Below are positions 1 through 18,440 of a stretch of 64,000 bases of DNA, in pieces. The stretch's first letter is position 1. The number at the start of each line of letters is the position of its first letter. Both the position numbers and the translations under genes were made by a program. The notes under the pieces are model-generated. The model made no database searches. It saw only the letters and a program-made list of their open reading frames with translations, and was not told the origin of the DNA. The DNA is taken from sequence record NC_041916.1, one strand, 5' to 3'.

Positions 1-3000
1 TGATGGTTGTTCCTGAAAGGGTGGTTGTACTACCTGCTATCGCTAGAGGGAGTTCCATCGTGTCGATAGAAACACCTTCGGCACCCGTGATGTTACTCAC
101 CCAGTTAATGACGTGAGTACCTTCAACGCCGTTGCCAGCATTAAACGTGTACGTCACCACTTCTTCAGTGTCACGAGTGAACTGGTAAGCGATTTGACCG
201 TTTTCATCAGTCATGGATTGAGGGAACGGAATACCGCCATCATCCCAAACCACACTCACGTTCGGCATAGGTTGCCCGAATTGGTCTTTCGTCAAGATAG
301 TAACATTGGCTGTTTCAGCAATGGTTGCTGTCTCAGGACCAGTGATCTCAATAGAGGTTACCACTGGAGGTGGAGCTGACCATGTAACAGTCAGAGTTAA
401 GTTCTCAACCGGACCGCTGCCGATGAAGTTGTAAACCACATCGCCGACTTCGTTAGCATTCAACGTAAACGTTGCGATACCATCTTGGTCAGAAGTGCGT
501 GCCGGCATGTTAGTACCACCGTCACTCCAAGCCACAGATTGACCAGCCATCGGATTACCGAATTGGTCTTTCGTTAGGATTTTAACTTCTAACGCTGTAC
601 CTGTTGTGCCCGCTGTTGGTGACTGAGTAAACTCCATGCTAGTGAAGATTGGATCAGGAAGACTCCAAGTAACTGTATGACCGATACGAGGAATGTTAGG
701 TTCCCAACCAAATTCGTAAAGCACGTCACCCGCTTCTGTAGCGTTGTAGTCGAACGACCACTTACCGCCCGGAGGTGAGCGGAACGCATCGCCCGGAGTA
801 CCGTTGATGAACGGACGGACTGATACGCCTTCGATTGGATTACCGTATTGGTCAAGCGTCATGGCTTCCAGTTTGACTGGTGTGCCAACTTCACCGGTGC
901 TTGGTTGTTCACCAACCCAAACGATGCTGGTGTATTCAGGTGGAACCAAGTGACCCCACTCAATATCAAACGATTCAGAAACCACAGCCCCAACATGAAC
1001 CGTGTAAGTCTTCTTCGTGTACTCAGCATAGCTGAGCGGGAACAAGAACTTACCTTCAGTGTCGATTGTACTTAATGTTTCACCGCCTTCAGTATCCACC
1101 AACTTAGCCACAACCACAGAGTTAGGAACTACGATTTGATCGTCAGCCGATAACAAGTGACCAGTTAGTTCAACTTCTTCACCTTCACTTGGATTTGCGC
1201 TGTGAGTATCAATAGCGATAGCTGTGTACTCTTTAAGCGGTTCATCCACCCAGCTGCTGTTCACTTGGGTACGAGCGTTCTCGGTGTAGATCATCACTTC
1301 AATAGAAGCGTCAGTCATACCCTCGATAGTGTACAGCCCGCGACCATGTTGGTTCGCATCAGGTGTGATAGTTAACGGTGTGAAGTTAGTGAAGTCAAAC
1401 GCCCCGATAACTGGGTTAGCAATCACCGCATCGTTCTGATCAGTAACCGTGATGTCAAACAACATCGCTTCACCGTTCACAGTAGGTTCGATGTTCAGTA
1501 CCTCTGTGATCGCCGAGCCTACCGGTTGATCAGTAAAGCTGACTTCGTAAACCCCAATGACCGTCGTTCCCACTTTAACTTCCAACATGACCGTTGAGTT
1601 TGGTTCTGTTGAGTTAAAGAGCAGCACCCCGTAACCTCGAGCATCCGTGTAAGTACCACGAATAGGTTGAGCACCACCTTGGATGTAAAGGTCTAGTGGA
1701 AGATCTACAACATCTGCACCAGCGTTCGTTGCTTTGAACGCCAAGAACACTGAACCGTCGTTAGCAGCACGTGTTGTAGAGAACGGAAGTTTTTCTACCG
1801 AGTCGTAAGCCGGAATAACCAACTCGACTTTAACAGTACCGTAAACTAGATCAGCGCCCGCACTCACGATCAATTCGTGATCACCTTCTTCGACCATATT
1901 AACATCAATACGGAACGAACCACCAATAGTTGGTGTGCTAACGTAATCAATCCCCGTTAGTTTGTCAGTGACTGTAACGACAACACCTTCAAGTAGATTA
2001 CCGTCTTTATCTTGGACGTTACCAGTAACCGCTACTGGTTTGTTAGGCAATGCTGTCGCAGGAACCACTACGTCACTAAGCACAACTTGTTTAGCTTCAC
2101 CATCCCAAGTAACAACGATGGATGTTTCTGATTCAACAATGTCGGTGAGCTTAGCTTTAATAGTGACAATCTCAGGGTCAGTAATAGAAACCACGTAAGC
2201 CTCTGAAACTTTACCTGTAGCGTAACCTAAGTGATCTGTAGTACCACCACTGATGTTTCCATACATCTCTTCAGAGTAGAAGTCTACCCACACGTTAGCA
2301 ACGCCTTGGTGAACTTGGTTCATTGCTCGAGCAACCAATGTTGCTTGCTCACCGTGTGCGACGGTTTCAGTGGTTGCTTTAGACATCTCAACCAACAGAT
2401 CGTCACGGAACGTTAGTGCAAACTCACCATAGTTCTCACCAGCATCACCTTCGTACTCTTGGTCTTCGAACCAGAATGTGTAGTCACCCGCCTCGTTCGG
2501 TACTACCGCTGAGTAAATTTCACCGTTAGGGCCGATGTGTGCGTAACCACCGTTGTAATCAACCCCGTCCATCTTACGATGTACAGCCACTTGAATACCG
2601 TAAGCTGGTTTGAATGGGTTACCGTCCGCATCTTGCGCTTGAGCCATGATAGGGAAGTAACCACCATCATTAACCATACCAACTGTCGGTGCGTCTGCGG
2701 TGAGCACGATCTTAGCTGGAGTAACTACATCGGCTTCGTCGACGACGACTAGGTCAAAGTAAACGCGGGAGTTAGATTGGCGGTGCCACATCACCATTGG
2801 GTGAGTACCCACCCCTAGTTTGAAGTCGCCGAACATTTCAGCGGTTTCAACGTTGTACACGGATGTTCCGTCAAGCACATAATCAGGAGAAGAAACAGAC
2901 ATCGCTTTGAAAGAAGGTAAGTGGTAAACATGCATGCCTTGAAGACTTGAGACGGGTGTACCAAGTTTATCTACAGCAGTGCATTTCACTACAGCTGATT

Positions 3001-5080
3001 TACCTACTTGTGTCTTCTCATTAATAGTGAAGTTAGCAAGTTCCATTACGCTCGGTCTTACATTACTACGAGTGTAATTCAGACGCAGTTGCTTGTCTTT
3101 GTACTTCGCCAAGTAGTAGACCGTTTCAAAGGCTTCAGTAAGTGGTGTATCCACCGTGACTTTAAGTTCAGCGAAACCGTATTCGTTGGTCATCACTGTC
3201 CCTAACTCTTCACCTTCGACTTCGTAGAAATCCGAACGGTAGAAGGTTACAGGTACGCCTGCCGCAGTTTCACCGTCGGCTGTAATAGCTGCAACACCAA
3301 TCAAGTCCTCAGTTCCTTCCGGTGTGGACTCGGTCATCCATGGTAGTGCTCTGAAACTTTCAAAGACTGGAACGCTGTCAATCCACGTGGTGTCATGATG
3401 TTCTGCTACCGCATTGGCGGCTAAGATCAATTCGTGATCACCGATAGGTAACGGACCGTAGTTGATGTTGAAACTGCCATCATCTCCAATTGCACCGTTC
3501 TCACCAAATTCTTGGTACTCCAATGTCGAGACGTTAAAGATACCGAGTTTCGTATCTTTAATAGGCGCACCGTTTTGGTCGTTCAGCACACCTGTGATCG
3601 TCATAGCGACATTATCTTTAGACTGGGTAGGGAAGACTACGTCTCTCAACGTCAAGCCCACAGGAACGCTTGCAGGCTTCCAGTAAACACCCGCCACTGC
3701 TTTAGACTCACCCACGATAGCGGTGATCTCTTCGTAGGTACGGTTTTCATCACCGCCCTGACTGATAGGAACTTCGAGGATGTGGTTGCCATCCACCGGT
3801 GTATTGGTGTAATGACGTTTACCAGAGCTCTCGATGTAATCTACCGCAGCAGCGGGTACCGCTTTACCATTAGTACCAGTAACAACGAAAGCAACAAAAC
3901 CATCCTGACCGGTAGGGACAGCATCGTTACCATATTCACACTTACTAATCGTTAACCCATCACGATATTCGAATTCGTGATCAAGTTTAGAAACCCCGTC
4001 AATCATCACGCCTTGACGTTGTGTCTTGGCTGTGTCTGATTGCGCGTTAATCACCAAAGAACCGTCTGGCAAAATAATGCCGAAAGACTTAGATGACCCG
4101 TTAATGGTGTTGTTGAATTTTAACTCGTTACGAACTTTAACCACTTCACCATCAGCGTTATAAGCAATAGCCTTAACGTAAGTATCTACCACGGTTGGGT
4201 AGACATGAGCATCGGGTGCAGTTAAACGAACCGTATCGATCACATCACTGACTTGGTCTTGCCACGTAACCGTAACGTCTTTACGACCGTTATCAGAGAA
4301 GAAGCACAAACGGTGTGAACCTTCACCTTGGTCATTCGGAGCCATGATGATACGACCATCAGGGTCTTGGTAAAAGTTAGAACTGATGATGGACAGTTTG
4401 TCTTTACTAAAGATGTCGAAGTTGTAAGGCTGAATAATCACTTCGCCATTTTGGTCTAACAAGTAACCACCCAGAACCGCACGACCACCCGGTTCCACTT
4501 CGTCAGTGTACATGAAGTCGGAAATCGCGTAAGTCAAAGGCTTGCTGTCGGTCGTCCATTCAACCGTGTGTGTTGCGATGGTTTTGCCAATGGTGGCATT
4601 AAAACGACGCGGACCTAATGCTAAGCTACCCGATTCCGTTGTAGGAGAAACTAGGAACTCAACGATACCGAAGCGGTCAGTGTTTACTGTAGCCGTCGGG
4701 TTCGGGTCTGAACTGTCGTCGTAGAACGTTACAGGTGCGTTTGGTACACCTTTACCATCAGGGTCAGTTACCGCAAAGGCGATCAATGCACTATGACCTT
4801 GGTGGGTTTCACTGGAGGAATAAGGGAGAACCGTTAAGTTCAAATCGTCTACGAAGAAGACTTCGTAAGAACCAACTTCTAACCCGTTGTACATGAATGT
4901 GATATCACATTCCCCTACCTTTTCAGAAGTCAGGTTAAATGACCACGTACCGTCTGGTTCGGTGATCACGGAGATGTCATCCCCACCATCACTTCGAACA
5001 CCGGTAATGGTTACTGGTTTTCCGGGCACGATAGGTCGACCCTGAGCATCCAGTATATTACCCTTAATAATCCCAATCAT
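1..5080 (-). CDS. Giant Ig-like (invasin/Big_1-like) repeat protein, probable tail fibre/adhesin; >=1693 aa, 3' end outside window
   Basis: Not in the ORF track because it has no stop in the window. ATG at 5080 after GGAG; my manual translation stays open to position 2 (MIGIIKGNILDAQGRPIVPG...MELPLAIAGSTTTLSGTTI). ~95-aa beta-rich repeats with DQxGxP and TDxxG motifs, similar to the C-terminal part of the upstream gene. Confidence 0.85.
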   Translation of the reverse strand, partial: MIGIIKGNILDAQGRPIVPGKPVTITGVRSDGGDDISVITEPDGTWSFNLTSEKVGECDITFMYNGLEVGSYEVFFVDDLNLTVLPYSSSETHQGHSALIAFAVTDPDGKGVPNAPVTFYDDSSDPNPTATVNTDRFGIVEFLVSPTTESGSLALGPRRFNATIGKTIATHTVEWTTDSKPLTYAISDFMYTDEVEPGGRAVLGGYLLDQNGEVIIQPYNFDIFSKDKLSIISSNFYQDPDGRIIMAPNDQGEGSHRLCFFSDNGRKDVTVTWQDQVSDVIDTVRLTAPDAHVYPTVVDTYVKAIAYNADGEVVKVRNELKFNNTINGSSKSFGIILPDGSLVINAQSDTAKTQRQGVMIDGVSKLDHEFEYRDGLTISKCEYGNDAVPTGQDGFVAFVVTGTNGKAVPAAAVDYIESSGKRHYTNTPVDGNHILEVPISQGGDENRTYEEITAIVGESKAVAGVYWKPASVPVGLTLRDVVFPTQSKDNVAMTITGVLNDQNGAPIKDTKLGIFNVSTLEYQEFGENGAIGDDGSFNINYGPLPIGDHELILAANAVAEHHDTTWIDSVPVFESFRALPWMTESTPEGTEDLIGVAAITADGETAAGVPVTFYRSDFYEVEGEELGTVMTNEYGFAELKVTVDTPLTEAFETVYYLAKYKDKQLRLNYTRSNVRPSVMELANFTINEKTQVGKSAVVKCTAVDKLGTPVSSLQGMHVYHLPSFKAMSVSSPDYVLDGTSVYNVETAEMFGDFKLGVGTHPMVMWHRQSNSRVYFDLVVVDEADVVTPAKIVLTADAPTVGMVNDGGYFPIMAQAQDADGNPFKPAYGIQVAVHRKMDGVDYNGGYAHIGPNGEIYSAVVPNEAGDYTFWFEDQEYEGDAGENYGEFALTFRDDLLVEMSKATTETVAHGEQATLVARAMNQVHQGVANVWVDFYSEEMYGNISGGTTDHLGYATGKVSEAYVVSITDPEIVTIKAKLTDIVESETSIVVTWDGEAKQVVLSDVVVPATALPNKPVAVTGNVQDKDGNLLEGVVVTVTDKLTGIDYVSTPTIGGSFRIDVNMVEEGDHELIVSAGADLVYGTVKVELVIPAYDSVEKLPFSTTRAANDGSVFLAFKATNAGADVVDLPLDLYIQGGAQPIRGTYTDARGYGVLLFNSTEPNSTVMLEVKVGTTVIGVYEVSFTDQPVGSAITEVLNIEPTVNGEAMLFDITVTDQNDAVIANPVIGAFDFTNFTPLTITPDANQHGRGLYTIEGMTDASIEVMIYTENARTQVNSSWVDEPLKEYTAIAIDTHSANPSEGEEVELTGHLLSADDQIVVPNSVVVAKLVDTEGGETLSTIDTEGKFLFPLSYAEYTKKTYTVHVGAVVSESFDIEWGHLVPPEYTSIVWVGEQPSTGEVGTPVKLEAMTLDQYGNPIEGVSVRPFINGTPGDAFRSPPGGKWSFDYNATEAGDVLYEFGWEPNIPRIGHTVTWSLPDPIFTSMEFTQSPTAGTTGTALEVKILTKDQFGNPMAGQSVAWSDGGTNMPARTSDQDGIATFTLNANEVGDVVYNFIGSGPVENLTLTVTWSAPPPVVTSIEITGPETATIAETANVTILTKDQFGQPMPNVSVVWDDGGIPFPQSMTDENGQIAYQFTRDTEEVVTYTFNAGNGVEGTHVINWVSNITGAEGVSIDTMELPLAIAGSTTTLSGTTI

Positions 5081-5146
5081 TATTAACTCCGTTAATTAGG
5101 TTAATTAAATTCTTTTGTTGACATCATCGTTGATTAAAGGATGAAA

Positions 5147-5168
5147 TAGGGGGAACGAATTCCCCCTA
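5147..5168 (-). terminator. UUCG-capped hairpin between the two Ig-repeat genes (weak terminator or processing signal)
   Basis: TAGGGGGAA-TTCG-TTCCCCCTA on the minus strand; only a short T run follows. Confidence 0.6.
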
Positions 5169-5206
5169 AGATTATGGACTGTCTTGTGACACTAAATCAC
5201 AGACCC

Positions 5207-8200
5207 CTAGATTATCGTCGCCGAACCTTTCATGGTTACGGTGTCATCGACGATACCCACCGGTGGTGAGTCTTCCGCAATATCAATACGGATTTCGAAC
5301 GGCTTCGGTAAGACCTCACCATTTTCAATCAGAATGTATTTGTTGGACGATTCATCCACGTTCACACGGTTAATGGTAATCAAGCCATCGATGACCTCGA
5401 CGCTCACTTCTTCGTAGTAAGAGCCAGTGTAAAGAATCATGTCTTTAACACCCGCTTGGTCCCAAGGACCGATTTCTACGTCAAAGAGTTTAGAACCACC
5501 GTCTACCGCACTTTGGTTGTAGTTGTAGTTATGACGATCGTACAGACCGACAGGCATGCTGCTGATCGGGTTACCACGTTGATCGATCACTTTACCACTG
5601 ACGTTGAACAGGTCGCCTAGGGCGATACCAGTTGCTTTAGTCAGCTCAGAGAACGACGTAGGTAACAAGATGCTGTCCGAAGACCAGTCTACGTTATGTT
5701 CATCACGTTTGCCAGCGTACACTGCAATAGCGGTTACACGATCACGGTCAACGATGTAAGGAACTCGGAATGTTGCCACGCCGTATTCATCTGTTGTCGC
5801 TTTCGCGTTCAACACACCATTGCCTTCGATAGAGATACCGAACGTACCACCAACAACTGGGTTACCCAAGTTATCTTTAAAGCCGTACGCCAAAGTAGCT
5901 TCTTTACCGAAGTGTAGATCAGAACTGCTGTAAGGTGCAGGATGCATCACCACGTTGTCGTGGTAGCGTACTGTGAGGTCACCCATGCCGATGTCATTGT
6001 CACCCGCTGGTGTCAACTTCCAAATAACTGTATCTTCTGCTCCGTGAGTCAGTGTTACTGTCCAGTTACCTTCAGTGTCAATGACACCTTTAATAACCGC
6101 ACCGCTTACTGAGTTCACTGCATCAAATTCAGTTTCCTCTGTAGGAGTAAATGGAGTGCCATCCAACTGATGCGCTGTACCCGTTACCACCATATCTGAG
6201 TTGGTTGTCCAGAAGTCACTTAGGTACTCTGATGGACGTAGGTCAGCCAACACCATAGGGCGAGCGTTCCAAACCACTTGTTCATTTTGATGGTGCATGT
6301 TCAATGCGAACACTACGTTGTTAGTCCCTTCTAGGAATGGACCGTAAGTTGCGTTCAACATACCGTCGCTGGTCAGGTTGTCTGACAGATCAACCAATTC
6401 CAGTTTCTCTTTCGAGAACACAACCGCCCAACCATTTTCAGCAGACTGGTTACCGTTTTGTGTTAACACGGTACCGTTGACGCTTAGTGGGTTAGGAAGT
6501 TCGGCTTGACGGACGATATTCAAAATACCGAAACTTGCCGGGTATTGTTCTGAATCGTTGACTTCCACCCAAGTAATGTAACCCTCGGACTTAGTATCAC
6601 CGAACACAGACTCGACATTATCGTTCTCAACAAACTCACCCCAACGTAGGGTAGATTCTGCGATACCGAATCGGTCAGTACGTACTTTGCTGATTGGTAC
6701 GTTAGGGAACGCATTCAGTCTAAACTCTACTGTGGCGTTAGGAACCCCATTGCCTGCTGCATCTTTAACGTAAGCCGCGATGAACACGTCTCCGCCTCGG
6801 ATAGCAGCGTCTTGAGAGTATTTAGCGTACGTGACTGCCGCACCACTGATGAACTTAACTGCTTTAGTAGCAATGTCTTGTCCATCTTTCACAAAGCTGT
6901 AGTGCCATTGACCGTCACTGCTTTGTTCCACTGGTATTGAAATCGTACCATCAGGCATCGCCCAAGCAGTACCGAACTCAACATCGTCAGTACGACGGTA
7001 ACTAACTTCAACCGGACCTTGGATACGCATACGTTGTTCACCTTCTTCAGGTGTCCAGCGCATAAGCTTACCATCGATCAACGTTTCCGCACCAGTGCCT
7101 ACTACCTCGGCAGTATCAGTTGGGATCATCCAACCAATCGCTGCGTATTGAACAGCCGGAGCTGACAACCAAGTGATCGTTCTAGTGAACTGAGAAGACT
7201 CAGTGTAGAACGCAATGTCGTGTTCCCCTTCTGATTGTGCTGCCAAATGTCCGTAGAACATCTCGCGGTCATTATCGTGCTTGGTTAACGTTACAGTTTG
7301 TAGTGTACGTTTGTTAAACGCTGACATAGCTGTAACCGGAACGTAACGATCGTTAAAGCCACCCATCGCCACTGCAACAACTGCATCTGAGCCCGCACCG
7401 ACTGTGTCAGTATGGTCTGACCAACGAACCATAACAGGCAAGCTGTAATCGTTCTTAGTCCAGTTGATGGTATGTTCTTCATTGAAGTCATTGGTGTAAC
7501 TAGCCAGTACTTTGATGTCGCCATCCCAGTAAACTGGTACCATTTGAACTTCGCCGAACACGGTGGTTTCTTTTGGATTCTCATCGTTGTCCGGAAGGAT
7601 GAATTCAGCAATACCGTTTTCATCAGTAAGAACAGTTTGTGACTGTAGACCCGCGTAACGCAAACTGATGGTTACAGGGATGTTAGGTACAGCGTTGCCG
7701 TACTCACCCATGGCAGCAATTGCTACAAAACCTTGTTCACGGTAAACCTGACGGGTGTTAGAGTAAGGTAGTACGCGAAGACCTACTACTGGTTCGGCTT
7801 CACCAACCCACTCGATGGTTTCTTCACGAATGTCATAACCTGTTGCGAACAACAGATGACGTGTTCCATCCCAAGAGCTTCCGCCTGCGATTGTTGCTGA
7901 CAGACTACCGTCACCGCCAAACTCGTAATAAGGAGGACGATGATTTACGTCAGACGCTGTACCACAGTCAACGTAATCGAACGAACCTTTATCAAAGATA
8001 AAGAAGTGTTCAGTCGGACTACTTTCACCTGCTTTCGCGCTCACGCCAGTGGTCAGTCTTACTTCACCACGACCATAACCGATTTGATCGATAAACGTCA
8101 CATCAATTACATCAGCCATTAGTGGATCAGTTGTACCAGCATCGTACCAAGTCACCGTTTGAGTTCTAGGCTGTGCCTCAACAAACACACTCGCCACACC

Positions 8201-11200
8201 GGAGGTGGTTTCGATAGTTTGACTTGTACCACTCAACACTGTTGGAGTGTCAATGACACCATTGGTTGGTGTGTCTGGGTTAAACGAAGCGACTACTGTA
8301 TTGGTTCCCGGTACCGCATCGTCACTACCAAGCACCAGTTCCATGATACCCCACTCATCGGTAATACCGTTCGTGTAGATTTCATTTTCTTCTGGGTTGA
8401 TAGCTTTCAACAGAGTCAGCCCTGCTACTGCTCGATCGTGTTCATCACGAACACCCCAAGCTACTCGCGCCGATTCCCCAGTAAAGCGGAAGGTTTGAGA
8501 GTAAGGCAGTTCTGTTACCGTACCATTGATGTATTCGATTTCAAACGTGGTTAAGATGCGTGAACCATCTTTGATGGTGTACACAACTGTACCCGCGCCC
8601 ACTACATCATGGATGTAGAAACCGATTGAACCGTCACTGTTAACCACGGTGTTACCAGTTGAACCGTCACTACCTTCCCATGTTACTGGGGTAGGAGTAG
8701 ATGGTTGGTAAACCGATTCGTCACCTGCAATACCTGTACCACGAATGTAGACCGTAGGAGCATCTACCGGAGTTAGGGCTTTTGTTGCGGTGTCGTCAGC
8801 CAGCTCAATGCGAGATAACACTTTATCGTAGACTCGCCATGTGATCGGCCACACTTTAGTATCACACTCAGAGAAGAACACTAGGTTGTGTTTACCTTCA
8901 GGAAGTGGATCCACCCAGAACGCTTGTTCACCGTTACCTAACACACCTGCCCAATCGTTAAGATCGTGTGCTGGAGGTAGGTTATCCGGGTCGTAAGGTT
9001 GTAGAGTCACCAAAGAGTAATCGTCACGGTTGTAACACATCAAACGACCAGTAGGGACTGGGTCGCCTTCTTCATTTGATACAACTGCACGCACTAACGG
9101 TGTAACACCGTTGTAAACAAACTGTGGTGCGTTAAATGAAGAGATCGTGTGAGCGATGTCTGTTTCTTCTGTCCAAATTAATTCCACCGTTGCTTCTTTC
9201 TCACCAGCAAAGCCAGCGATTTCACCAAAGCCTGTTTGGTAGTAAGGAACTGTGTATTCAAACTTACCGTACTTGTCAGTTATGCCATAACCCAAGTCTT
9301 TCTCTACCGGCAAGCGTTGGACGATGTCAATGCGTTGACCTACCATCACATCACCGTTCTCGTCTACCACGTACCAGCCAATGGTCATGGTCTCACCCAC
9401 CGGAATGCGGTAGTCTAGGTCGACGTTAGGTAATGGACGAATAAAGATCTCGCCTTCGAATTTAACTGTGAATGTACCGACTACACGAGTGTTAGATTTA
9501 AAGGTGTATTGGATATCGCCTTCTACATCGCTAGATGCTTTGAACGACCAACGACCATCACCCATGGAGTGTGCTTTCGCTACATTACCGTTACCGTACT
9601 CTACATCAAACTCGAATTCAGTGCCCGGAGCAAACAGTTTACCATGTTGGTCTACTGTCTCACCCTCCAACAACGCTGGAAGACCAAGTTTCGTTTCACG
9701 CGGCAAGCCGGCGTCAAACTTCAAGTTGTCTAAGCGTGCTGGTTCACCCATCCAAGTAATGGTGTGGGTTACCGGAGCCTTACCTTCTAGTTCAAACAAG
9801 AACGTAGTAACTTCCCAATCTTTAAACGGACCGACTTGAGTTTCAAAGCGACCGTCGATGCCTGCGTAAATCAGATCAGACTCACCGCTACCTAGTCGGG
9901 TAACCTTGATTGGGGTTTGACCTTCACTTACAAAGTCATTGCCTTCTGCATCCACCAATTTACCGGAAATAGCCACGGTAGTACCGGCAGGTGCTTCTGT
10001 TGGGTTTTCACTATCCAGTACAATGCGGTCAGCCACGATAACTTCTTTCTCCCACGTTGCCGTGCCGAAAGCGAAGTCGTTGTCTGTCCATACGACGATG
10101 TCGTAAGTATTGCCCGGTTCCATGTACGCGTGGTTCAACACATACGTACCTTTAGCGGCTGTCGTAGTAACGTTAGCCGGATTCCATTGAGGGCCGAAAC
10201 CAAACGTTGTAGTGACACCTTGTACCAGTTCACCGAATTGATCGTAGACACGACCTGTGACCGCCATTTGATCGGTACCCACAAAGGTCCAGTCAATTTG
10301 GTCTAAGGTGATGCGGTCGCCGTAAGACTCAGTTTCTACCCAAGTCAATACACGAACGTCGTCGGTACCGCCCGCCTTGATGTTCATGACTGCAACTTTC
10401 TCATCACCCGTATGGAAACGAGTCAACAAGAAATCACCATTTTCATCTGTGGTCTCCGCTCGGATAGTATCCAAGTCATCACCAACCATGGAGTAGAATG
10501 GGAAGTCACGTAGACGGTTTTGTTCGTCGTCTTCCAAGTAACCGTAAGCGCGTGCAGGTTTGTTCACACCCACTTTCGTAGGAGAGTAAGGATAGAACTC
10601 ACTAACGATGGTGTTTTCATTCTCGATGATCTCGATATCTTTTTCCAAGATATAAACTGGTGCTTTACCCGTTTCGAATGCAAACTCGATAGTTTCAGTT
10701 TCACCTACTGGTTTCTCGGACCATGTGTAGAAGCGGAATGAACCGTCAATCTTCACAGGAACTTTACGTGGGGACTTATCGTGGAATACACCACCACGAA
10801 CCATTAAGTTCGTTAAGCCGTCTTTCATTGGTTTACCGAACTGGTCGTAAACCACACCACTTACCGCAAAGACTTCATTCAGACCAATGCGACCCACTAC
10901 TTCACGATCAAGTTCAATCGACGTAGGTTCTGGTGTTTCTGTACTTGGGCCTTCCACGACATCAATAGAGACACCTGTGGTTGCCAATAACAGACGTTCG
11001 CCTTGAATGGATTCGTAAACCCAACGAACAAAGATCGTACGACCTTGTGGTTCTTGTACATCCAAGTAAAGCTTGTCTGCCCATTTCGATATCGCGTAAG
11101 AGTACACTTTACCTGAGCTGACTTCAATCTCAAAGTGAGTAGGTTTCATCGGACCTTTCTCACGCTGGCTATTGTACGACGGTTCTACTGCATAGTAGGT

Positions 11201-12667
11201 GTCTTCCAACCACTCGTCTTGAGATTCGTAACCTTTACCGAATTCGATTTGCTGACGACCATCGGCTTGGTTAACCGCTTTGAACGTAGGGTCGTTGTAA
11301 GCACTTTGATCGTAAGAATAACGAACGTCAAACTTGCTGCCGTCTTCGTTACCCGGTGCTTTCAGAATGAACGTCGTAGACTGACGCATGATCATTGGTT
11401 CGAACGTAGGAACCACATCACTTAGACGTAGGTTCAACTCAATGGTTTGTTCCACGCCGTAAGTCGTAGGACGGAAAGCAGGAGACAACTCATTGATACG
11501 AACGTAATCGGTAGCGTCCATAATGAAAGAACGATCTAAGTCGGTCAGGTAGTGTTTCAACTGGTACTGACCATTCACCCATGTAGGGTAAGAGTAAAGC
11601 TTAGGTGAGTAAGCCCCGTCGAAGTCTATCGCCAGCAATGAGTAAGAATCTCGGTACTGGTTCGGGTTACCCGGTTGAGCTTCGTAGATGTGCTCGTCTG
11701 GGTCCAAGTTGTACACTAAGGTCAAAGTACCACGTTGCCCCGGAGTCGAAGGCTTGTGTTCATTCAGACCGTACAAAATGACCTTCTGACCATCGATCGG
11801 TAACTCTTCTGATTTCGAACCGTCACTGTAGTGCACCAAGGCACGGAATGCCAAGTTTTGCAGCACCGTGTTAACTGGCACGTTCAGAGTTTTAGGGTCA
11901 CCAGAGTTCAGGAACCAAGGAGCGAGCAACTCCACTTTACGGATGTAACGTTTACCCACTTGGTGGTCACGTAGCATAGCCGTGTGCTGAACCGTTAGCG
12001 AACGCGCTTTCGGAATCATGTTACCGGTATGGTCGAACCACACCAAGGTCGCACGACTGCCATCTGGCAGTTCTTCCGCATTACGGTTCACGGAGAATGG
12101 TTGAGTAACCATGATCTCTTTGTTCGACAAATCGTGGTGTGCAGCTAACGTAGCAGGAATGCGGTTAGAGATCATTTCGTTGTTACTACCGTACACAACC
12201 GAAATGACTTTACCATTTTCCCCTACGGTGTTGCCTTCGTACAACAGAGCGTACGCGGCACCCGGTGCCATTACTTGACCATCTACCACGGCACGGTTAG
12301 GACGCACTGAGTAGTCGATACCAACGATCGCTTCTCCTTGGTAACCCGCAGGCAAACCAAAGATGGAGTTAAGTGGGTCGGAGTTACCATCACCACCGGT
12401 GTTAAAGATAGGTTCTAGGGTAGAACGTAAGTCCCCTTCCCAGTTAACGTGCGAAACGATGTACCATTGTTGAGCGACAGGGTCAACGACCATTTCTTTC
12501 TCTTTAGGTACACGGTAACGACTCTCCTCCCCCGGCTTCACCGTATCAGGGTTATAGACATCCCAAATATAGTGAAAACGTCCGGCTTCATTATCGTTAG
12601 GGAGCTGTGGACCAGCTCCCGGGATAACGGCGGATTGGGTAGGACTGTTTAAAGTTTTACTAAACAT
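5207..12667 (-). CDS. phiKZ gp26-like baseplate protein (N-terminal ~580 aa) fused to a ~1900-aa Ig-like repeat array
   Basis: Start moved to the ATG at 12667 (GAGG RBS; MFSKTLN). Lies next to gp27/gp28-like, sheath and tube genes. A P/T/E linker (GPSTETPEPT, ~10940) precedes repeated Ig-like domains. Confidence 0.75.
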   Translation of the reverse strand: MFSKTLNSPTQSAVIPGAGPQLPNDNEAGRFHYIWDVYNPDTVKPGEESRYRVPKEKEMVVDPVAQQWYIVSHVNWEGDLRSTLEPIFNTGGDGNSDPLNSIFGLPAGYQGEAIVGIDYSVRPNRAVVDGQVMAPGAAYALLYEGNTVGENGKVISVVYGSNNEMISNRIPATLAAHHDLSNKEIMVTQPFSVNRNAEELPDGSRATLVWFDHTGNMIPKARSLTVQHTAMLRDHQVGKRYIRKVELLAPWFLNSGDPKTLNVPVNTVLQNLAFRALVHYSDGSKSEELPIDGQKVILYGLNEHKPSTPGQRGTLTLVYNLDPDEHIYEAQPGNPNQYRDSYSLLAIDFDGAYSPKLYSYPTWVNGQYQLKHYLTDLDRSFIMDATDYVRINELSPAFRPTTYGVEQTIELNLRLSDVVPTFEPMIMRQSTTFILKAPGNEDGSKFDVRYSYDQSAYNDPTFKAVNQADGRQQIEFGKGYESQDEWLEDTYYAVEPSYNSQREKGPMKPTHFEIEVSSGKVYSYAISKWADKLYLDVQEPQGRTIFVRWVYESIQGERLLLATTGVSIDVVEGPSTETPEPTSIELDREVVGRIGLNEVFAVSGVVYDQFGKPMKDGLTNLMVRGGVFHDKSPRKVPVKIDGSFRFYTWSEKPVGETETIEFAFETGKAPVYILEKDIEIIENENTIVSEFYPYSPTKVGVNKPARAYGYLEDDEQNRLRDFPFYSMVGDDLDTIRAETTDENGDFLLTRFHTGDEKVAVMNIKAGGTDDVRVLTWVETESYGDRITLDQIDWTFVGTDQMAVTGRVYDQFGELVQGVTTTFGFGPQWNPANVTTTAAKGTYVLNHAYMEPGNTYDIVVWTDNDFAFGTATWEKEVIVADRIVLDSENPTEAPAGTTVAISGKLVDAEGNDFVSEGQTPIKVTRLGSGESDLIYAGIDGRFETQVGPFKDWEVTTFLFELEGKAPVTHTITWMGEPARLDNLKFDAGLPRETKLGLPALLEGETVDQHGKLFAPGTEFEFDVEYGNGNVAKAHSMGDGRWSFKASSDVEGDIQYTFKSNTRVVGTFTVKFEGEIFIRPLPNVDLDYRIPVGETMTIGWYVVDENGDVMVGQRIDIVQRLPVEKDLGYGITDKYGKFEYTVPYYQTGFGEIAGFAGEKEATVELIWTEETDIAHTISSFNAPQFVYNGVTPLVRAVVSNEEGDPVPTGRLMCYNRDDYSLVTLQPYDPDNLPPAHDLNDWAGVLGNGEQAFWVDPLPEGKHNLVFFSECDTKVWPITWRVYDKVLSRIELADDTATKALTPVDAPTVYIRGTGIAGDESVYQPSTPTPVTWEGSDGSTGNTVVNSDGSIGFYIHDVVGAGTVVYTIKDGSRILTTFEIEYINGTVTELPYSQTFRFTGESARVAWGVRDEHDRAVAGLTLLKAINPEENEIYTNGITDEWGIMELVLGSDDAVPGTNTVVASFNPDTPTNGVIDTPTVLSGTSQTIETTSGVASVFVEAQPRTQTVTWYDAGTTDPLMADVIDVTFIDQIGYGRGEVRLTTGVSAKAGESSPTEHFFIFDKGSFDYVDCGTASDVNHRPPYYEFGGDGSLSATIAGGSSWDGTRHLLFATGYDIREETIEWVGEAEPVVGLRVLPYSNTRQVYREQGFVAIAAMGEYGNAVPNIPVTISLRYAGLQSQTVLTDENGIAEFILPDNDENPKETTVFGEVQMVPVYWDGDIKVLASYTNDFNEEHTINWTKNDYSLPVMVRWSDHTDTVGAGSDAVVAVAMGGFNDRYVPVTAMSAFNKRTLQTVTLTKHDNDREMFYGHLAAQSEGEHDIAFYTESSQFTRTITWLSAPAVQYAAIGWMIPTDTAEVVGTGAETLIDGKLMRWTPEEGEQRMRIQGPVEVSYRRTDDVEFGTAWAMPDGTISIPVEQSSDGQWHYSFVKDGQDIATKAVKFISGAAVTYAKYSQDAAIRGGDVFIAAYVKDAAGNGVPNATVEFRLNAFPNVPISKVRTDRFGIAESTLRWGEFVENDNVESVFGDTKSEGYITWVEVNDSEQYPASFGILNIVRQAELPNPLSVNGTVLTQNGNQSAENGWAVVFSKEKLELVDLSDNLTSDGMLNATYGPFLEGTNNVVFALNMHHQNEQVVWNARPMVLADLRPSEYLSDFWTTNSDMVVTGTAHQLDGTPFTPTEETEFDAVNSVSGAVIKGVIDTEGNWTVTLTHGAEDTVIWKLTPAGDNDIGMGDLTVRYHDNVVMHPAPYSSSDLHFGKEATLAYGFKDNLGNPVVGGTFGISIEGNGVLNAKATTDEYGVATFRVPYIVDRDRVTAIAVYAGKRDEHNVDWSSDSILLPTSFSELTKATGIALGDLFNVSGKVIDQRGNPISSMPVGLYDRHNYNYNQSAVDGGSKLFDVEIGPWDQAGVKDMILYTGSYYEEVSVEVIDGLITINRVNVDESSNKYILIENGEVLPKPFEIRIDIAEDSPPVGIVDDTVTMKGSATII

Positions 12668-15242
12668 TTTTAACCTCAAAGTGTCCGTTAGTATTAATAC
12701 GAGATTCTAAGAAAACCTCATTAACCCGTTGTATGAAAATCAATTGCTTCGGTTCTACCACTGGTACGTATTGCTGTACATACGGGAAGACCGCAAAGTA
12801 ACGAACATCGTAACCCAATTGTACAGGGTCGTACTTAAGCAACCATTGAAAATCTGCTGTCTTACGCAATACATAGTCTTTGGAGTAAGATTCACCACTA
12901 GGTAGGTCATCCAGTTCCAATAGACCGAGTAAGATACGGTTCACTACCATGTTCATGAACGGACTGTACACACGGTACTTATCCATTAAAGAAGGGATGG
13001 CTTGTGGAGCAGGTTTCTTCGCAAACAGTGTTAGGTACTGACTCATTCGACGGTCACGGTCTCGTGCTTCTTCCCAACCATGTGAAGTATCGTACGGTAC
13101 CCAGTCTCGAAGAGGTAGATACCAATGTTTCACACCGTACGGTTTCCCGTTCAATGGGTTCAACACTTCACTCGGTGGATTGAGTTCCGCCACCGCTACC
13201 TTAGCCGGGTCCCAGACCTTACCATCGATCGTAGTGCGCGTTATACGGTCTTCTCGCAAGTTGTATTGACCATTATGACCAATCACACCACCAGTGACGT
13301 AACCTAACTCAGATTGTTCCAGAGGGGTCTTATCGTCGATTGGTGACCACTCACTACAATAAAGGACGAAATCGTTTCCTCCGTCTTTTAAGTATTGGTG
13401 GTTTAAGATATGAACGTCAGGGAAGTCCACCACGTAATCCACGTTCTCTATTAAAGAACGACGGTTCATGATGACCATGATGTTAGCTGGTGCAATGTCC
13501 ACCAACAACCCACCCTGAATCCATTCTCGTGTGACACTGAAAGATAATGAATTATCGATGTGGTTTAACGTGAACTCTTTGTACAACGTTTGGTCGTTGT
13601 AAACAATCAACCCCATGAACATCTTAGACGCCAATGTCCATGTCACGTTCCCCGTAGCACGATCAAAGAGATAGTCTTTCCCTTCTTCCGCCACCATTCG
13701 TTCTCCGGAGTACTCTCCTTCGGTGGTGACCGCCTGAACGTAAAAACGCGGCGTTGTGTTAGGGTCAACGTTCATCACCCCTCGACCGGCTTCTGCGTGA
13801 ATACGACGTCCCGGTTTACCCGGGAAGAATTCCACTAACCCAACATCACTGCTTGGTCTGACGAAATTCACACGACTTAAATATCGCATGCGAAGGAATA
13901 ACCCTTCCGAATCGTATTCAAACATGGTGAGGTCTTTACGACATGCAGGAGGGACTTCGAGTTCCGCTCCTGTTGAAGCGTCGTAAGACACAGGAGAAGC
14001 ACAGAGCACTTGCGTGGCTCGGTTGTACCCGATCGCCTTCATCGCCAAATCGTGGTTAATGTCCTTATAAGGGATGGTCAAGAACTCGTTTGTGGCGGAT
14101 TGTTCCAGATTGACTGCCAGCCATTCTTTCATGGTGGAGTTAATCCCGATCAATGCACCAACGATGTTCTCGTCATTCATGCGGTATAACCATCTCGCTC
14201 CATTAGACTCATAAGGAATCTCTTGAGCGTAGTTATTACGACGATACACCAACAACAACTGAGGACGGTCTTCGTTCACCATTTCTTGCATGTTGGTTTT
14301 ATCGTCCACCAAGGACGCGTTGACAGCGTAGTCGCGGTGAGTCAATTGACGGAAGTGACTCGCTTCGTTACGGTTAAGATACACCCCACGTTTCTTACGG
14401 TTCACTAAATAAAAGGCGACATCCGCCACATAGTGATACGTAAAGTCCCCGTCGACTTTAGGTGGGTGAACAATTAACTTACGAACGTTATCTCGCTTAG
14501 ACTGGAAGTTAGGCAAAGAGCCAACCTCATACATTTCTGTTTTCCAGACGCTAGGGTCATTGGTGATTTCGATGACCTCCGTTCCTAACAGTTGATCGTC
14601 CGCTGGAAACCCATCCCACAAATAACCATTCAAGTACACCGAGGTTAAACCCGGTAACTTGAGGTATTGTGCATAGATGATTTTCATGCGGTCTTTTTCT
14701 TCCGCTGAGTTATCGTTGTTAGAACTGAACCGCGGCCAGTCTAATTGTTGATTGTTGGTAAGTGGATTGTAAACTTCGGTTTGTATCGTGTAACAGTGAA
14801 CATAACGAGGTTCTTTCCAGCTCTGTTTGAATGCTCGCAACTTTTGTATCGCTAACAATTGTTGTCCGTCGTAAGTCGACATAATCCAACACTTGTCTCG
14901 AGGATATAAACGACCGTCATCTCCGTAGATGTCGACGATCATACCTCGTTCTTTACAAATCTTCGCAACGTTAATCCATTGGTCTACCGGATCCATGCGA
15001 GTGAACAATTCATGGAAGTTCCATGTCGAGCCATCAAAGCCAGACATGTTGTAAATCATGAAGTAGTCTCGTTCAATCGGAGTCTTGCGGTAACGTCCCA
15101 TGAACTGGAACGTGTTAATGTATCCCACGTCCGGTGATACCTGTGTCAGCATCAACTGAAACTGACGACCGGTACCGGGATTGGAATACATGTCCTTAAT
15201 GGCGTAACGCGCTAAAGGGGTGCGATAATTATCGACTAACAT
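12660..15242 (-). CDS. Virion structural (baseplate) protein, phiKZ gp27-like, 860 aa
   Basis: Long ORF with GAGGGG RBS; size and position match the gp26-gp27-gp28 / sheath-tube block. Confidence 0.7.
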   Translation of the reverse strand: MLVDNYRTPLARYAIKDMYSNPGTGRQFQLMLTQVSPDVGYINTFQFMGRYRKTPIERDYFMIYNMSGFDGSTWNFHELFTRMDPVDQWINVAKICKERGMIVDIYGDDGRLYPRDKCWIMSTYDGQQLLAIQKLRAFKQSWKEPRYVHCYTIQTEVYNPLTNNQQLDWPRFSSNNDNSAEEKDRMKIIYAQYLKLPGLTSVYLNGYLWDGFPADDQLLGTEVIEITNDPSVWKTEMYEVGSLPNFQSKRDNVRKLIVHPPKVDGDFTYHYVADVAFYLVNRKKRGVYLNRNEASHFRQLTHRDYAVNASLVDDKTNMQEMVNEDRPQLLLVYRRNNYAQEIPYESNGARWLYRMNDENIVGALIGINSTMKEWLAVNLEQSATNEFLTIPYKDINHDLAMKAIGYNRATQVLCASPVSYDASTGAELEVPPACRKDLTMFEYDSEGLFLRMRYLSRVNFVRPSSDVGLVEFFPGKPGRRIHAEAGRGVMNVDPNTTPRFYVQAVTTEGEYSGERMVAEEGKDYLFDRATGNVTWTLASKMFMGLIVYNDQTLYKEFTLNHIDNSLSFSVTREWIQGGLLVDIAPANIMVIMNRRSLIENVDYVVDFPDVHILNHQYLKDGGNDFVLYCSEWSPIDDKTPLEQSELGYVTGGVIGHNGQYNLREDRITRTTIDGKVWDPAKVAVAELNPPSEVLNPLNGKPYGVKHWYLPLRDWVPYDTSHGWEEARDRDRRMSQYLTLFAKKPAPQAIPSLMDKYRVYSPFMNMVVNRILLGLLELDDLPSGESYSKDYVLRKTADFQWLLKYDPVQLGYDVRYFAVFPYVQQYVPVVEPKQLIFIQRVNEVFLESRINTNGHFEVKNV

Positions 15243-15273: not shown

Positions 15274-16152
15274 TTAAAGGATGATAGGGTAAGAGTTCGT
15301 AATGGTCATCACCAAAGCACGGTTGTTTTTCTCGTTGTACTTAGGATCCAACTGCATGCCTAACGGCGTTTTACCGTAAGCGTTCTTATCCGAAATCGTA
15401 GCAGCACACATACCCACTAATAAAGGTGGGTGTTCTAGACCAGCGCCAACGATCTGTTTACCGGTTGCTGAATACCAGATACGTTGACCAAGAGCAACCA
15501 AGTCTTTCACTTGCATGTTCTTCAGTTTGTACATACCCGGGTAATTCACCAAAGCTTCGTGAAGTTTAGGAAGGGTGTCAATGAAATCGATTTGTTCCAG
15601 CACTTCCAAGCTACGACGACGATCAATTCCCATGACTTGTTGACACAAGTTTTGAGAAGTAAAGGTCATGTCGCCAACGTTACCGTTAACCAGACAGTTG
15701 TAGTAGTGAATAAGGATGATGTAAACCGAGAGTGCTTTGTCTTCTTCTAAACCAGACTGGCGAATGATTTGAGAACCCCAAGCACGAGCTAGTGCACGAG
15801 CCACGGTAGACTGGGTACCACGAACGACAGCCAAGTTACCGTCGATGATGTCTTGCTGAACATACGCGGCTACTAATAAAGCAGCACGTTCAGAAGAGTT
15901 AGTGACGACGCCGTTTTTGTTCGTGTATGGACGATCGTCCATTACGGTGATTGGTTTGCGGTTGAACCCAATCATAGATAGAGGGAAGTTCAGGAAAGGG
16001 ATGTTCTGACCGTTATCGTGAGTGATGGAATAAACACCGTTACCTAAAGATAACAAGTCGTTTGACAACGATAAACGTTTAAGGGTAGATGGCACATGAT
16101 CTAAGTGTGCTAATGGTTTACCGACATAAGTGTCGTAAGCATTAGAAAACAT
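15274..16152 (-). CDS. Virion structural protein, phiKZ gp28-like, 292 aa
   Basis: GGAG RBS; divergent from the sheath gene as in phiKZ-like phages; size match. Confidence 0.65.
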   Translation of the reverse strand: MFSNAYDTYVGKPLAHLDHVPSTLKRLSLSNDLLSLGNGVYSITHDNGQNIPFLNFPLSMIGFNRKPITVMDDRPYTNKNGVVTNSSERAALLVAAYVQQDIIDGNLAVVRGTQSTVARALARAWGSQIIRQSGLEEDKALSVYIILIHYYNCLVNGNVGDMTFTSQNLCQQVMGIDRRRSLEVLEQIDFIDTLPKLHEALVNYPGMYKLKNMQVKDLVALGQRIWYSATGKQIVGAGLEHPPLLVGMCAATISDKNAYGKTPLGMQLDPKYNEKNNRALVMTITNSYPIIL

Positions 16153-16296: not shown

Positions 16297-18435
16297 ATGT
16301 CCTTTACTAATATAGTTCCGGGGCAAGTCCGTAACCAAGGTATCGGTGATGATTCACGCCCAGTCGTGGTTCCTCAGCTGGCTACCTATCCTTGTAACTT
16401 CCCAGTTATCAGTATGGTTACTCCAAAAGGACCTCTCGGACAGAAGTACATTAACACGCGAGATCATGGCGACATCTACGGTGACGTCCAAGATGTCGAT
16501 GGACCGTACTACAACCCGATCGCGGCGTTGATCCACTCACTATCAAGTGGTGGTCAGGCGTCGTTTGGTCAGCGTCGTTTGACAGCCAACAAAGAAATTG
16601 CTCGTGTAGCAATTGGTGTTAAAGTGACTAAAGGTAAAGTGCAGCAGTACAAACGTGATGACGCACAACAATTTATCTTAGACGACGCTGGTAAGCGCGT
16701 ACCAGTAACAGATGGCACCACAGAGCACGAAGGTCTGAAGATCGAACATGTTCTGATGGACACCACTGATCTGGCCTACAAAGGTCTTAAACCAGTAGAA
16801 GGTACGGGTGCGACTGAAGAAGAAAACTTCACCATCTATCCTCTTTACGAACTACCTGCGGGTATCGGCGACCTCTACAACCGTATGGGTCACTACGCTG
16901 GTGTTAATCCTTCTGCTGACTTCCAACAAATCGCTAACTTCGTAAGTGAATTTGGTGTGTTCCCATTCACTATCAAGCTGTACGAGAAATCTGTGTACGG
17001 CACACCAGTGATGGCTAAAACACTGATCAACACAGAAGAAGCACCTTTCACTCTGTTCGATCTTCGTGCAAACGGCGTTCGTTACTCAATGAAAGAAGCT
17101 ATCGGTGCTTACACCGGTGCTACAGCTAACCGTCCGATCACGCCACGTCCTGCTCCGTTCTACGAAGCACACGTGTACAACGATTCGATCGAAACGCTGG
17201 CTAAGCTAATGTTTGGTGTTGAAGAAAAGGCTATGCCTGATAACTTGGTTTACTTGGAAGGTGTTAAGCCTTACAAACAAATGAACCCGTTAACGGCAGT
17301 TACTCACGAAGGCATCCCATACTACGCGATCGAGATTGCTACAGAGTCTCGCTTGTTCAACATGGGTGCTCAGTTGGATGCGAAAGGTGGTATCTCACCA
17401 TTCCTAACCAAAGAGTATCAAGTGCCTGAAGGTGTTACACTTTCTCGTGAGTACAACCTAAATCCAGCTAACGGTCCGGTTGAAGAACTAAACCGTAAAG
17501 ATGCGTGGGCGGTGACACAAGCGCTGTATCTAGCAGACCTTATGGAATACCGTAAGTCTCTAGAGATCACTGACTGGACTCGCAACCGTCAATCGATCAT
17601 CTTTGATGTTGGTTTCAACTCAGATATCGTAGACGAACAGATCCAACTGTTGGCGGCTCGTAAAGACCACGTAGCGGTATTTGCGTCAGCGGAATGGTTG
17701 AAGAACGCCACAATCCAAGAGCATTACTCTCGTCAAACGTACATCACTAACCGTCTTCGTCTGATTCCTGAATCAGAGAAATACGGCACACCTGCTTGTC
17801 GTGCGATGATTGCAATGTGGGAAATGAACAAGATCAATGAAGAGTCTAGCGAAGCATTCTCTCATGTACTTGACATCGCTTACCACATGGCTCTATTGGG
17901 TGGTAACGCTCAAGGTCAATTGATCAAAGCGAATTCTCCTGATCACGCGGACAACCGTATTCTAAGTACGATGTTCAACCCTACTGTCGATATTGAAGCA
18001 GACCCTGTGGCTGCGGCTAACTTCGACAACGGTGCTTGCACTCTTCGTCCTTACAACCAAGAACAGTTGTACCGTCCTGCGCTACCAACTGTTTACCCAC
18101 ATTCAGACTCTGTTCTGAAAGATTGGACTACAGTCTTCACTTCTGTTTGTGTTGAGAAGATCATCCAAGATACGTGGACGTTGGTTTCTGGTGATACCAC
18201 TATCACTTCAGAAGAGTACGCTGCGATTGTTAAAGATCGTGCGGAAACAGAATGTCGTGAACGCCTAGGCACTATGTACGAAGATTTGGTCATTGAACCA
18301 ACGTACAACGAAGGTGGTCCGGATTCTCGTTCTGTACTTTACGTAACAGGCTACGTTGCTTTCCGTAAAGGTAAGTACATGATGGACATGTCTCTTGTTG
18401 CACGCAACGAGCAAGACTTGGTAACTGAGGGGTAA
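16297..18435 (+). CDS. Contractile tail sheath protein (phiKZ gp29-like), 712 aa
   Basis: GGAG RBS; sheath-like C-terminus (PDHADNR, LYRPALPTVY, SVLKD); followed by a tube-sized gene; strongly biased codons. Confidence 0.85.
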   Translation: MSFTNIVPGQVRNQGIGDDSRPVVVPQLATYPCNFPVISMVTPKGPLGQKYINTRDHGDIYGDVQDVDGPYYNPIAALIHSLSSGGQASFGQRRLTANKEIARVAIGVKVTKGKVQQYKRDDAQQFILDDAGKRVPVTDGTTEHEGLKIEHVLMDTTDLAYKGLKPVEGTGATEEENFTIYPLYELPAGIGDLYNRMGHYAGVNPSADFQQIANFVSEFGVFPFTIKLYEKSVYGTPVMAKTLINTEEAPFTLFDLRANGVRYSMKEAIGAYTGATANRPITPRPAPFYEAHVYNDSIETLAKLMFGVEEKAMPDNLVYLEGVKPYKQMNPLTAVTHEGIPYYAIEIATESRLFNMGAQLDAKGGISPFLTKEYQVPEGVTLSREYNLNPANGPVEELNRKDAWAVTQALYLADLMEYRKSLEITDWTRNRQSIIFDVGFNSDIVDEQIQLLAARKDHVAVFASAEWLKNATIQEHYSRQTYITNRLRLIPESEKYGTPACRAMIAMWEMNKINEESSEAFSHVLDIAYHMALLGGNAQGQLIKANSPDHADNRILSTMFNPTVDIEADPVAAANFDNGACTLRPYNQEQLYRPALPTVYPHSDSVLKDWTTVFTSVCVEKIIQDTWTLVSGDTTITSEEYAAIVKDRAETECRERLGTMYEDLVIEPTYNEGGPDSRSVLYVTGYVAFRKGKYMMDMSLVARNEQDLVTEG

Positions 18436-18440
18436 TCTAG

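Follow-up and report, generated by a model that had tools for sequence, protein, structure and literature searches.

What would a phiKZ-like phage do with a baseplate protein that carries nearly two thousand additional residues of immunoglobulin (Ig)-like domains? The question is raised by gp161 (FDH33_gp161) of Vibrio phage pTD1, a member of the Tidunavirus group of the Gorgonvirinae that infects V. parahaemolyticus. The gene lies in the window analysed here, a stretch of 64,000 nucleotides (nt) identical to positions 175277-239276 of the pTD1 genome (AP017972 / NC_041916). GenBank and RefSeq label its product 'virion structural protein', and its family is listed in PHROGs as phrog_27497, an uncharacterised virion protein. 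Our analysis leans towards a protein whose N-terminal part would anchor it in the outer rim of the baseplate, while the remainder would serve as an accessory adhesion fibre.

The gene is a single unbroken open reading frame (ORF) that runs from an ATG at 12667 to a stop codon at 5207-5209. An alternative TTG start four codons upstream would yield a protein of 2490 residues; we take the ATG as the start, since it agrees with the GenBank record and with all orthologues. In window coordinates, the gene and its parts are the following:

5207-12667 (minus strand): gp161, 2486 aa, a gp26-like anchor followed by an Ig-like array
10958-12667 (minus strand): residues 1-570, the anchor domain, a full-length homologue of phiKZ gp26 (phrog_3430, PDB 9xqd, tblastn)
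10928-10954 (minus strand): residues 572-580, the PSTETPEPT linker, kept in both Gorgonvirinae genera
8243-10936 (minus strand): residues 578-1475, Ig-like domains D1-D9, each of 93-109 aa (AlphaFold, Foldseek, VIA)
5378-8197 (minus strand): residues 1491-2430, D10-D18, about nine more beta-sandwich domains (low-confidence model, Big_1 and hidden Markov model (HMM) matches)
5210-5377 (minus strand): residues 2431-2486, a C-terminal tail of 56 aa with a D-E-S-S-N motif, ending like the first strand(s) of another Ig domain

The first-pass annotation of this DNA had proposed that the N-terminus is gp26-like, and the profile searches bear this out. Residues 20-569 match phrog_3430 end to end (positions 8-551 of 554, E 3e-144), and residues 39-556 match chain PHIKZ026 of PDB 9xqd (residues 22-538 of 552, E 3e-59). 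By tblastn, the domain is found in 289 phage records, including phiKZ gp26 (28% identity, E 1e-50), EL and SPN3US; a Pfam search of gp161 returned no family for it. The linker that had been read at about 10940 is indeed present, and a length of about 550 residues, as given at that stage, is typical for the orthologue (phiKZ 552, SPN3US 547, EL 574, Yong XC31 552, pir03 553). The SPN3US counterpart named at that stage, gp259, is also correct by gene order: the 547-residue homologue stands just before the terminase, and with the sheath being gp256 and the terminase gp260, it corresponds to gp259.

The description of the protein as a 'core' baseplate component, on the other hand, does not hold. 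According to the phiKZ structural atlas of 2026, gp26 is a cross-linker that sits in peripheral, outer star lobes of the baseplate, with five copies per lobe (PMC13250141). Each of the six lobes consists of five gp26, two gp27 (the framework of the lobe), five gp139 dimers, one gp127 and two gp130 (PMC13250141). A gp157 ring, made of dimers, braces the lobes (PMC13250141). Within this assembly, gp26 cross-links the lobe components partly via its own C-terminus and amounts to 30 copies per virion (PMC13250141).

The genomic setting of gp161 reproduces that of phiKZ gp26. As in phiKZ, the pTD1 genes run in the order gp28-gp27-gp26 and diverge from those for sheath and tube, with the stop of gp162 overlapping the start of gp161 by 8 nt:

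12660-15242 (minus strand): gp162, 860 aa, homologue of phiKZ gp27 (tblastn E 2e-51; phrog_3184)
15274-16152 (minus strand): gp163, 292 aa, homologue of phiKZ gp28
16297-19337 (plus strand): tail sheath (16297-18435) and tail tube (18441-19337), transcribed divergently, like phiKZ gp29/gp30
62018-63307 (plus strand): homologue of phiKZ gp157, the outer-baseplate brace ring (tblastn E 9e-34; the coordinates are those of the alignment span)

Besides gp27 (E 2e-51) and gp157 (E 9e-34), tblastn detected pTD1 homologues of phiKZ gp130 (E 2e-9) and gp139 (E 1e-26), of the wedge protein gp128, and three gp131-like fibre proteins; it detected no homologue of gp127 in the pTD1 genome. Because homologues of gp27, gp130, gp139, gp157, gp128 and gp131 are all encoded, the star-lobe architecture is probably conserved in pTD1. 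We also considered the Ig array as a substitute for lost phiKZ rim proteins, an idea that was rejected with gp27, gp130, gp139 and gp157 homologues all present.

Beyond the anchor and linker, the protein continues for 1916 residues rich in V, G, T and D. Both AlphaFold models show them as all-beta, and they can be divided into about 18 domains, typically of 90-105 aa, plus the 56-residue tail. The first-pass annotation was right about an Ig-like extension of roughly 1900 residues, and its figure of some 20 domains comes down to about 18. For residues 571-1490, the model built on a 10-sequence alignment has a mean pLDDT (predicted local distance difference test) of 78.7 and resolves nine domains of 93-109 aa. 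For residues 1491-2486, the alignment held four sequences only, and the resulting all-beta model of about nine domains and the tail has low confidence (pLDDT 51.5), so the domain count of this distal half is approximate.

Structural comparison places the domains in the Ig/MG class. A Foldseek search with the proximal model retrieved tandem MG/Ig arrays with E values down to 1e-22 (complement C5, alpha-2-macroglobulins, contactin and the GhpA grappling hook). VIA-align superposed one domain on the Ig domain of a GH2 beta-galactosidase with a Z score of 10.4 and a root-mean-square deviation of 2.5 A over 91 residues, and gave a Z of 9.8 against invasin (1cwv). At the sequence level, the Pfam family Big_1 (PF02369) scores 60.6 bits for the whole protein versus a gathering cut-off of 34.9. 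Pfam recognises just four individual domains as Big_1, with matches in the distal half near residues 1653, 1962 and 2257, and an iterated HMM finds a Big_1-like motif at about 12 positions of gp161.

Self-BLAST of gp161 gave no internal matches; the repeats were seen only by the iterated HMM and by a shuffled-score comparison. In the latter, run over all 18 domains, those three apart are the most alike (mean z 3.25) while neighbours are not (mean z 0.41), a pattern that supports a three-domain super-repeat in the array.

One domain stands apart from this scheme. D10 (residues 1491-1622, window 7802-8197) is atypical in its length of 132 aa and low model confidence, holds one of only three cysteines in gp161, and has no Pfam match; the super-repeat skips one domain there. 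D10 might be a non-Ig insertion.

Comparison with the relatives VP4B and phiKT1028 reveals a gradient of conservation along the protein:

residues 1-570 (anchor): 92% identity to VP4B, 87% to phiKT1028
residues 571-1200: 89% identity to VP4B, 73% to phiKT1028
residues 1201-1620: 76% identity to VP4B, 71% to phiKT1028
residues 1621-2486: 60% identity to VP4B, 46% to phiKT1028

The forms found in Aphroditevirus align colinearly with gp161 (50% identity) as far as about residue 1620, and the Tidunavirus proteins have about eight domains more. The ratio of nonsynonymous to synonymous substitution rates (dN/dS, Nei-Gojobori) is 0.05 in the anchor and 0.2-0.34 distally, well below 1 in all segments, values that are rough as synonymous sites are near saturation. 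Judged from these ratios and identities, the array is maintained by purifying selection throughout, with a fixed base and a faster-evolving far end. Divergence at that end does not follow the host. pTD1 and VP4B infect different host species and have 60% distal identity, while pTD1 and phiKT1028 share the same host species and have 46%; Aphrodite1 (from Vibrio) and PDCC-1 (from Photobacterium) show 85% and 68% identity. As far as these pairs indicate, distal similarity tracks phylogeny, not host.

The distribution of the extension was surveyed by two word-based searches, one covering candidates of 1367-4350 aa and the other those of 313-997 aa; orthologues of 997-1367 aa fall outside both. The search among the longer proteins, scored on residues 1-570, returned nine clusters with an anchor identity of at least 74%, and their lengths are either about 2481-2486 or about 1576-1587 aa. 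The search among the shorter ones, using the 570-residue anchor, returned 46 clusters, 44 of which measure 548-601 aa; the remaining two, of 771 and 868 aa, have a similar low-complexity linker followed by two or three canonical Big_1 domains. Most orthologues are consequently without the extension, in agreement with the earlier view of an appendage added to a protein of ordinary size. Lengths near 2480 aa belong to Tidunavirus (pTD1, VP4B, phiKT1028) and those near 1590 aa to Aphroditevirus-type phages. Within the lengths sampled, the long extension is, by homology search, a Gorgonvirinae-specific trait. In phiKZ, SPN3US, Yong XC31 and pir03, the terminase gene comes directly after the 547-574-aa protein, and in EL after one small ORF.

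The 868-aa form, with three Big_1 domains, is encoded on a metagenomic phiKZ-like contig (GCA_013565735.1; L011:7310-9916) that has the usual tube, sheath, gp28-like and gp27-like genes, and it is possible that this protein is an early stage of the same accretion. The ORF directly after it has 777 aa, the same length as the pTD1 terminase and, judged by that length, is probably a terminase too.

Taken globally, these observations incline us to the reading of gp161 as a baseplate-anchored accessory adhesion fibre, for which we infer the position in the virion, the copy number, the outward projection and the adhesion itself. Mechanistically, the gp26-type first 570 residues would place gp161 in the outer star lobes, beside the gp27-like gp162, in 30 copies per virion if the phiKZ stoichiometry holds. 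The short Pro/Thr/Glu linker and the following 18 or so Ig/MG-like domains would then form a flexible rod off the baseplate rim, with a length of roughly 60-70 nm if each of 18 domains is assumed to span 3.5-4 nm. Such a rod would make weak, reversible contacts with polysaccharide-rich surfaces (the host envelope or capsule, biofilm, chitin or mucus), and these contacts would raise the chance of the conventional gp131-type fibres finding their receptor. We propose an accessory rather than a primary role because the canonical gp131-type fibre genes are retained. The conserved-to-variable gradient, as it appears in the alignments, is what one would predict for a fibre that is fixed at one end and free at the other.

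Several points weigh against this proposal. Relaxed constraint by itself could also account for the gradient, the model of the distal half is of low confidence (the pLDDT of 51.5 given above), and Pfam found no lectin or other recognisable binding or tip domain in gp161. Our literature search found no proteomic or electron microscopy (EM) data for pTD1 or its relatives, and nothing relevant on Ig domains or EM fibres in pTD1, pVa-21, pVa-22, BONAISHI or phiKT1028. Furthermore, several gp26 copies of phiKZ have their C-termini buried at the gp157 ring, at the neighbouring gp26 and at the gp130/gp139 interface (PMC13250141), and an exit path for 30 chains of 1900 aa from such buried termini is not evident.

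In a rival reading, the array would be a structural brace that follows or surrounds the baseplate or sheath and works as a net, a ruler or cement, either on its own or jointly with the four array proteins encoded between gp161 and the terminase. phiKZ gp26 is itself a cross-linker with a C-terminus that acts as a connector (PMC13250141). Every segment of the array is under purifying selection, its closest fold matches are alpha-2-macroglobulin and complement proteins, with their compact rings of MG domains, and three phages that divide the Ig block differently into ORFs have similar totals (7184, 7095 and 8004 aa). However, the bracing proteins of phiKZ, gp139, gp157 and gp130, are still present in pTD1, so nothing obvious needs replacing; the distal divergence is high for a lattice with fixed contacts, and the relatives with two or three Big_1 domains are too short to brace anything. 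We consider a bracing role unlikely, though it is the rival to be taken seriously.

Variability at the far end could alternatively mean that gp161 is the primary receptor-binding protein, with distal Ig domains that recognise the receptor and set the host range. The distal third is the most variable part (43-60% identity within Tidunavirus, versus 87-92% for the anchor), dN/dS rises in the same direction, and phiKT1019 and phiKT1028, both with the extension, have reported broad host ranges. Yet pTD1 retains three gp131-like fibre genes, the distal similarity tracks phylogeny and not host, the Vibrio jumbo phages pir03 (553 aa) and Yong XC31 (552 aa) have the plain form, and Pfam detected no receptor-binding tip domain, which together make this role quite improbable. 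The first-pass annotation had offered host range and environmental adhesion as candidate functions; the retained gp131-like genes, the phylogeny-tracking divergence and the other Vibrio jumbo phages without the extension leave the former as the weaker option, and environmental or accessory adhesion would appear to fit better.

It is scarcely credible that the extension is never displayed, being cleaved at the linker or restricted to a minor long form so that the virion would contain a phiKZ-like 570-residue gp26: the linker holds S-T-E, which fits the S/A/G-X-E motif preferred by the prohead proteases of phiKZ-like phages, but these proteases act inside the prohead and are not expected to act on tail proteins, the 1916 residues are under purifying selection in at least nine sequence clusters, and PHROG and RefSeq label the full-length family 'virion structural protein' (a label, not an experiment).

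The gp161 extension is the opening part of a larger insertion of Ig arrays. Between gp161 and the terminase, pTD1 encodes four Ig-array genes, gp160 (1726 aa), gp159 (1630 aa), gp158 (1156 aa) and gp157 (756 aa), on the minus strand (window 2-5080, genome 164281-180356; locus L010 / L001:19588-29780). They are made of Big_1, MG3, MG4, Invasin_D3 and CarboxypepD_reg-type domains. With the gp161 extension they add up to 7184 aa and 21.5 kb, about 9% of the genome, of which some 5300 residues lie beyond gp161. The features next to gp161 within the window are:

2-5080 (minus strand): gp160, 'putative invasin', 1726 aa, a free-standing Ig array whose C-terminal end lies beyond the window and whose first domain starts at the B strand
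5150-5166 (minus strand): a weak terminator-like hairpin within the gp161-gp160 gap (126 nt)

The block is partitioned differently in three phages:

pTD1: 7184 Ig-array residues in 5 ORFs
Aphrodite1: 7095 Ig-array residues in 3 ORFs (the free-standing ones of 3529 and 2548 aa)
phiKT1028: 8004 Ig-array residues in 6 ORFs (five free-standing)

Since the partitions differ and pTD1 gp157 aligns inside Aphrodite1 gp042, the ORF boundaries in the block are fluid. A sixth pTD1 Ig-array protein of about 1423 aa, annotated as 'putative hemagglutinin/hemolysin-related protein', is encoded far from the block (genome 15185-19462, minus strand).

The position of these boundaries relative to the domains is regular (window 5081-5260; L005:16740-16800). 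An additional Ig domain seems to open with its first strand(s) in the gp161 tail, and the strand that would come next is where gp160 begins; the gp160/gp159 boundary has the same split pattern. In four phages, each of the 11 free-standing array ORFs that were examined opens at the B strand, with 3-15 residues ahead of the HMM position, as opposed to 23-27 for internal copies. Across the gp161/gp160 boundary, the three-domain super-repeat stays in register. The two halves of the split domain are a mere 10 nt apart in Aphrodite1, and the D-E-S-S-N motif near the C-terminus is common to the Tidunavirus and Aphroditevirus proteins despite the different domains that precede it. A strict motif search had pointed to an N-terminal domain unique to ORF starts; this was withdrawn, as domain comparison and the HMM show the same type internally, and ORF starts differ only in lacking the first strand. 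Regular cutting inside Ig domains after the first strand suggests gene fission.

Joining of gp161 to gp160 by read-through or frameshift was rejected. The 126-nt gap in pTD1 is in frame and holds four further in-frame stops, and the gaps in phiKT1028 (125 nt) and Aphrodite1 (10 nt) are out of frame, so read-through is excluded. A more speculative scheme, which we hold possible if doubtful, is that gp161, anchored in the baseplate, could be the starting link of a mega-fibre concatenated without covalent bonds, with the split domains rejoined by donor-strand complementation; the pairing of strands in pilus subunits would be the model for the two halves of the domain shared by gp161 and gp160. 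If this were true, chains of at least 50 Ig domains would be assembled from separate gene products, and ORF fission and fusion would remodel them.

The terminase that follows the block in pTD1 (777 aa) belongs to phrog_2 and is a homologue of phiKZ gp25 (32% identity, E 1e-105). Several records of this gene deserve comment. phiKZ gp25 (717 aa, L007:9739-11892) is unannotated in AF399011, and the labels of the terminases of Aphrodite1 (gp043, 'DarB-like antirestriction', L016:18510-21725) and phiKT1028 ('helicase', L017:19083-22289) both look wrong. These last two carry an insertion of about 288 aa at residues 187-475, which the pTD1 terminase is without, and which is possibly an intein or a homing-endonuclease insertion.

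These results bear on how phages build appendages. It was only in 2026 that the phiKZ baseplate was resolved, with gp26 turning out to be an internal cross-linker of an elaborate outer rim; in a marine phage lineage, the same type of protein would be the root of a very long Ig-like appendage. The natural series of 570, 771, 868, about 1590 and about 2480 aa offers a view of how phages may grow new fibres on a conserved scaffold. It also raises the question of whether large, slowly diffusing virions are held on surfaces by Ig-domain whiskers, which bears on the reported persistence of related phages in the shrimp gut and on their use in aquaculture. The cutting of ORFs within an Ig domain leads, in turn, to a directly testable hypothesis of strand-complemented assembly. 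We did not find described in the literature searched a gp26 cross-linker as anchor, an array of about 18 domains, the super-repeat, the graded lengths or the regular splitting of Ig domains at ORF boundaries.

Compared with known systems, gp161 is closest to phiKZ gp26, SPN3US gp259 and EL gp9. The homology spans about 520 residues, and the place in the gp28-gp27-gp26 operon and the partner genes agree as well. Proteins of the phiKZ type are 547-574 aa long and the terminase gene comes next, whereas gp161 extends for another 1916 aa, with four Ig-array genes before the terminase. Ig-like additions to phage structural proteins are well known, for example in T4 Hoc, Wac, tail-tube and fibre proteins, and usually comprise 1-4 domains; a survey of such domains on phage structural proteins is reportedly that of Fraser et al. 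in 2006. gp161 resembles these additions in having C-terminal Big_1/Ig domains on a conserved virion protein, in varying among close relatives and in its presumed, weakly adhesive accessory role. It differs in its number of domains (about 18), in being attached to a cross-linker of the baseplate rim, in its super-repeat and in its continuity with a block of about 7200 aa.

Invasin/intimin (1cwv) and bacterial alpha-2-macroglobulins share with gp161 the domain type (Big_1/Invasin_D3/MG) and the tandem rod, with VIA Z scores of 9.8-11. Pfam searches of gp161 and gp160 found neither the inverse-autotransporter barrel nor the C-type-lectin tip of invasin/intimin, and those of gp161 and the array proteins gave no thioester domain (TED), bait region or A2M match, only MG3/MG4-type domains in the neighbouring array proteins. 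The name 'putative invasin' given to gp160 refers to the domain type only. Finally, two reports describe jumbo myoviruses with supernumerary fibres, the whiskers of CBB (PMC5259590) and the hyperbranched fibres of phiKp24 (PMC9700779). Both phages would resemble our model of pTD1 in forming extra appendages from large multi-domain proteins, although they belong to unrelated lineages and use different anchors.

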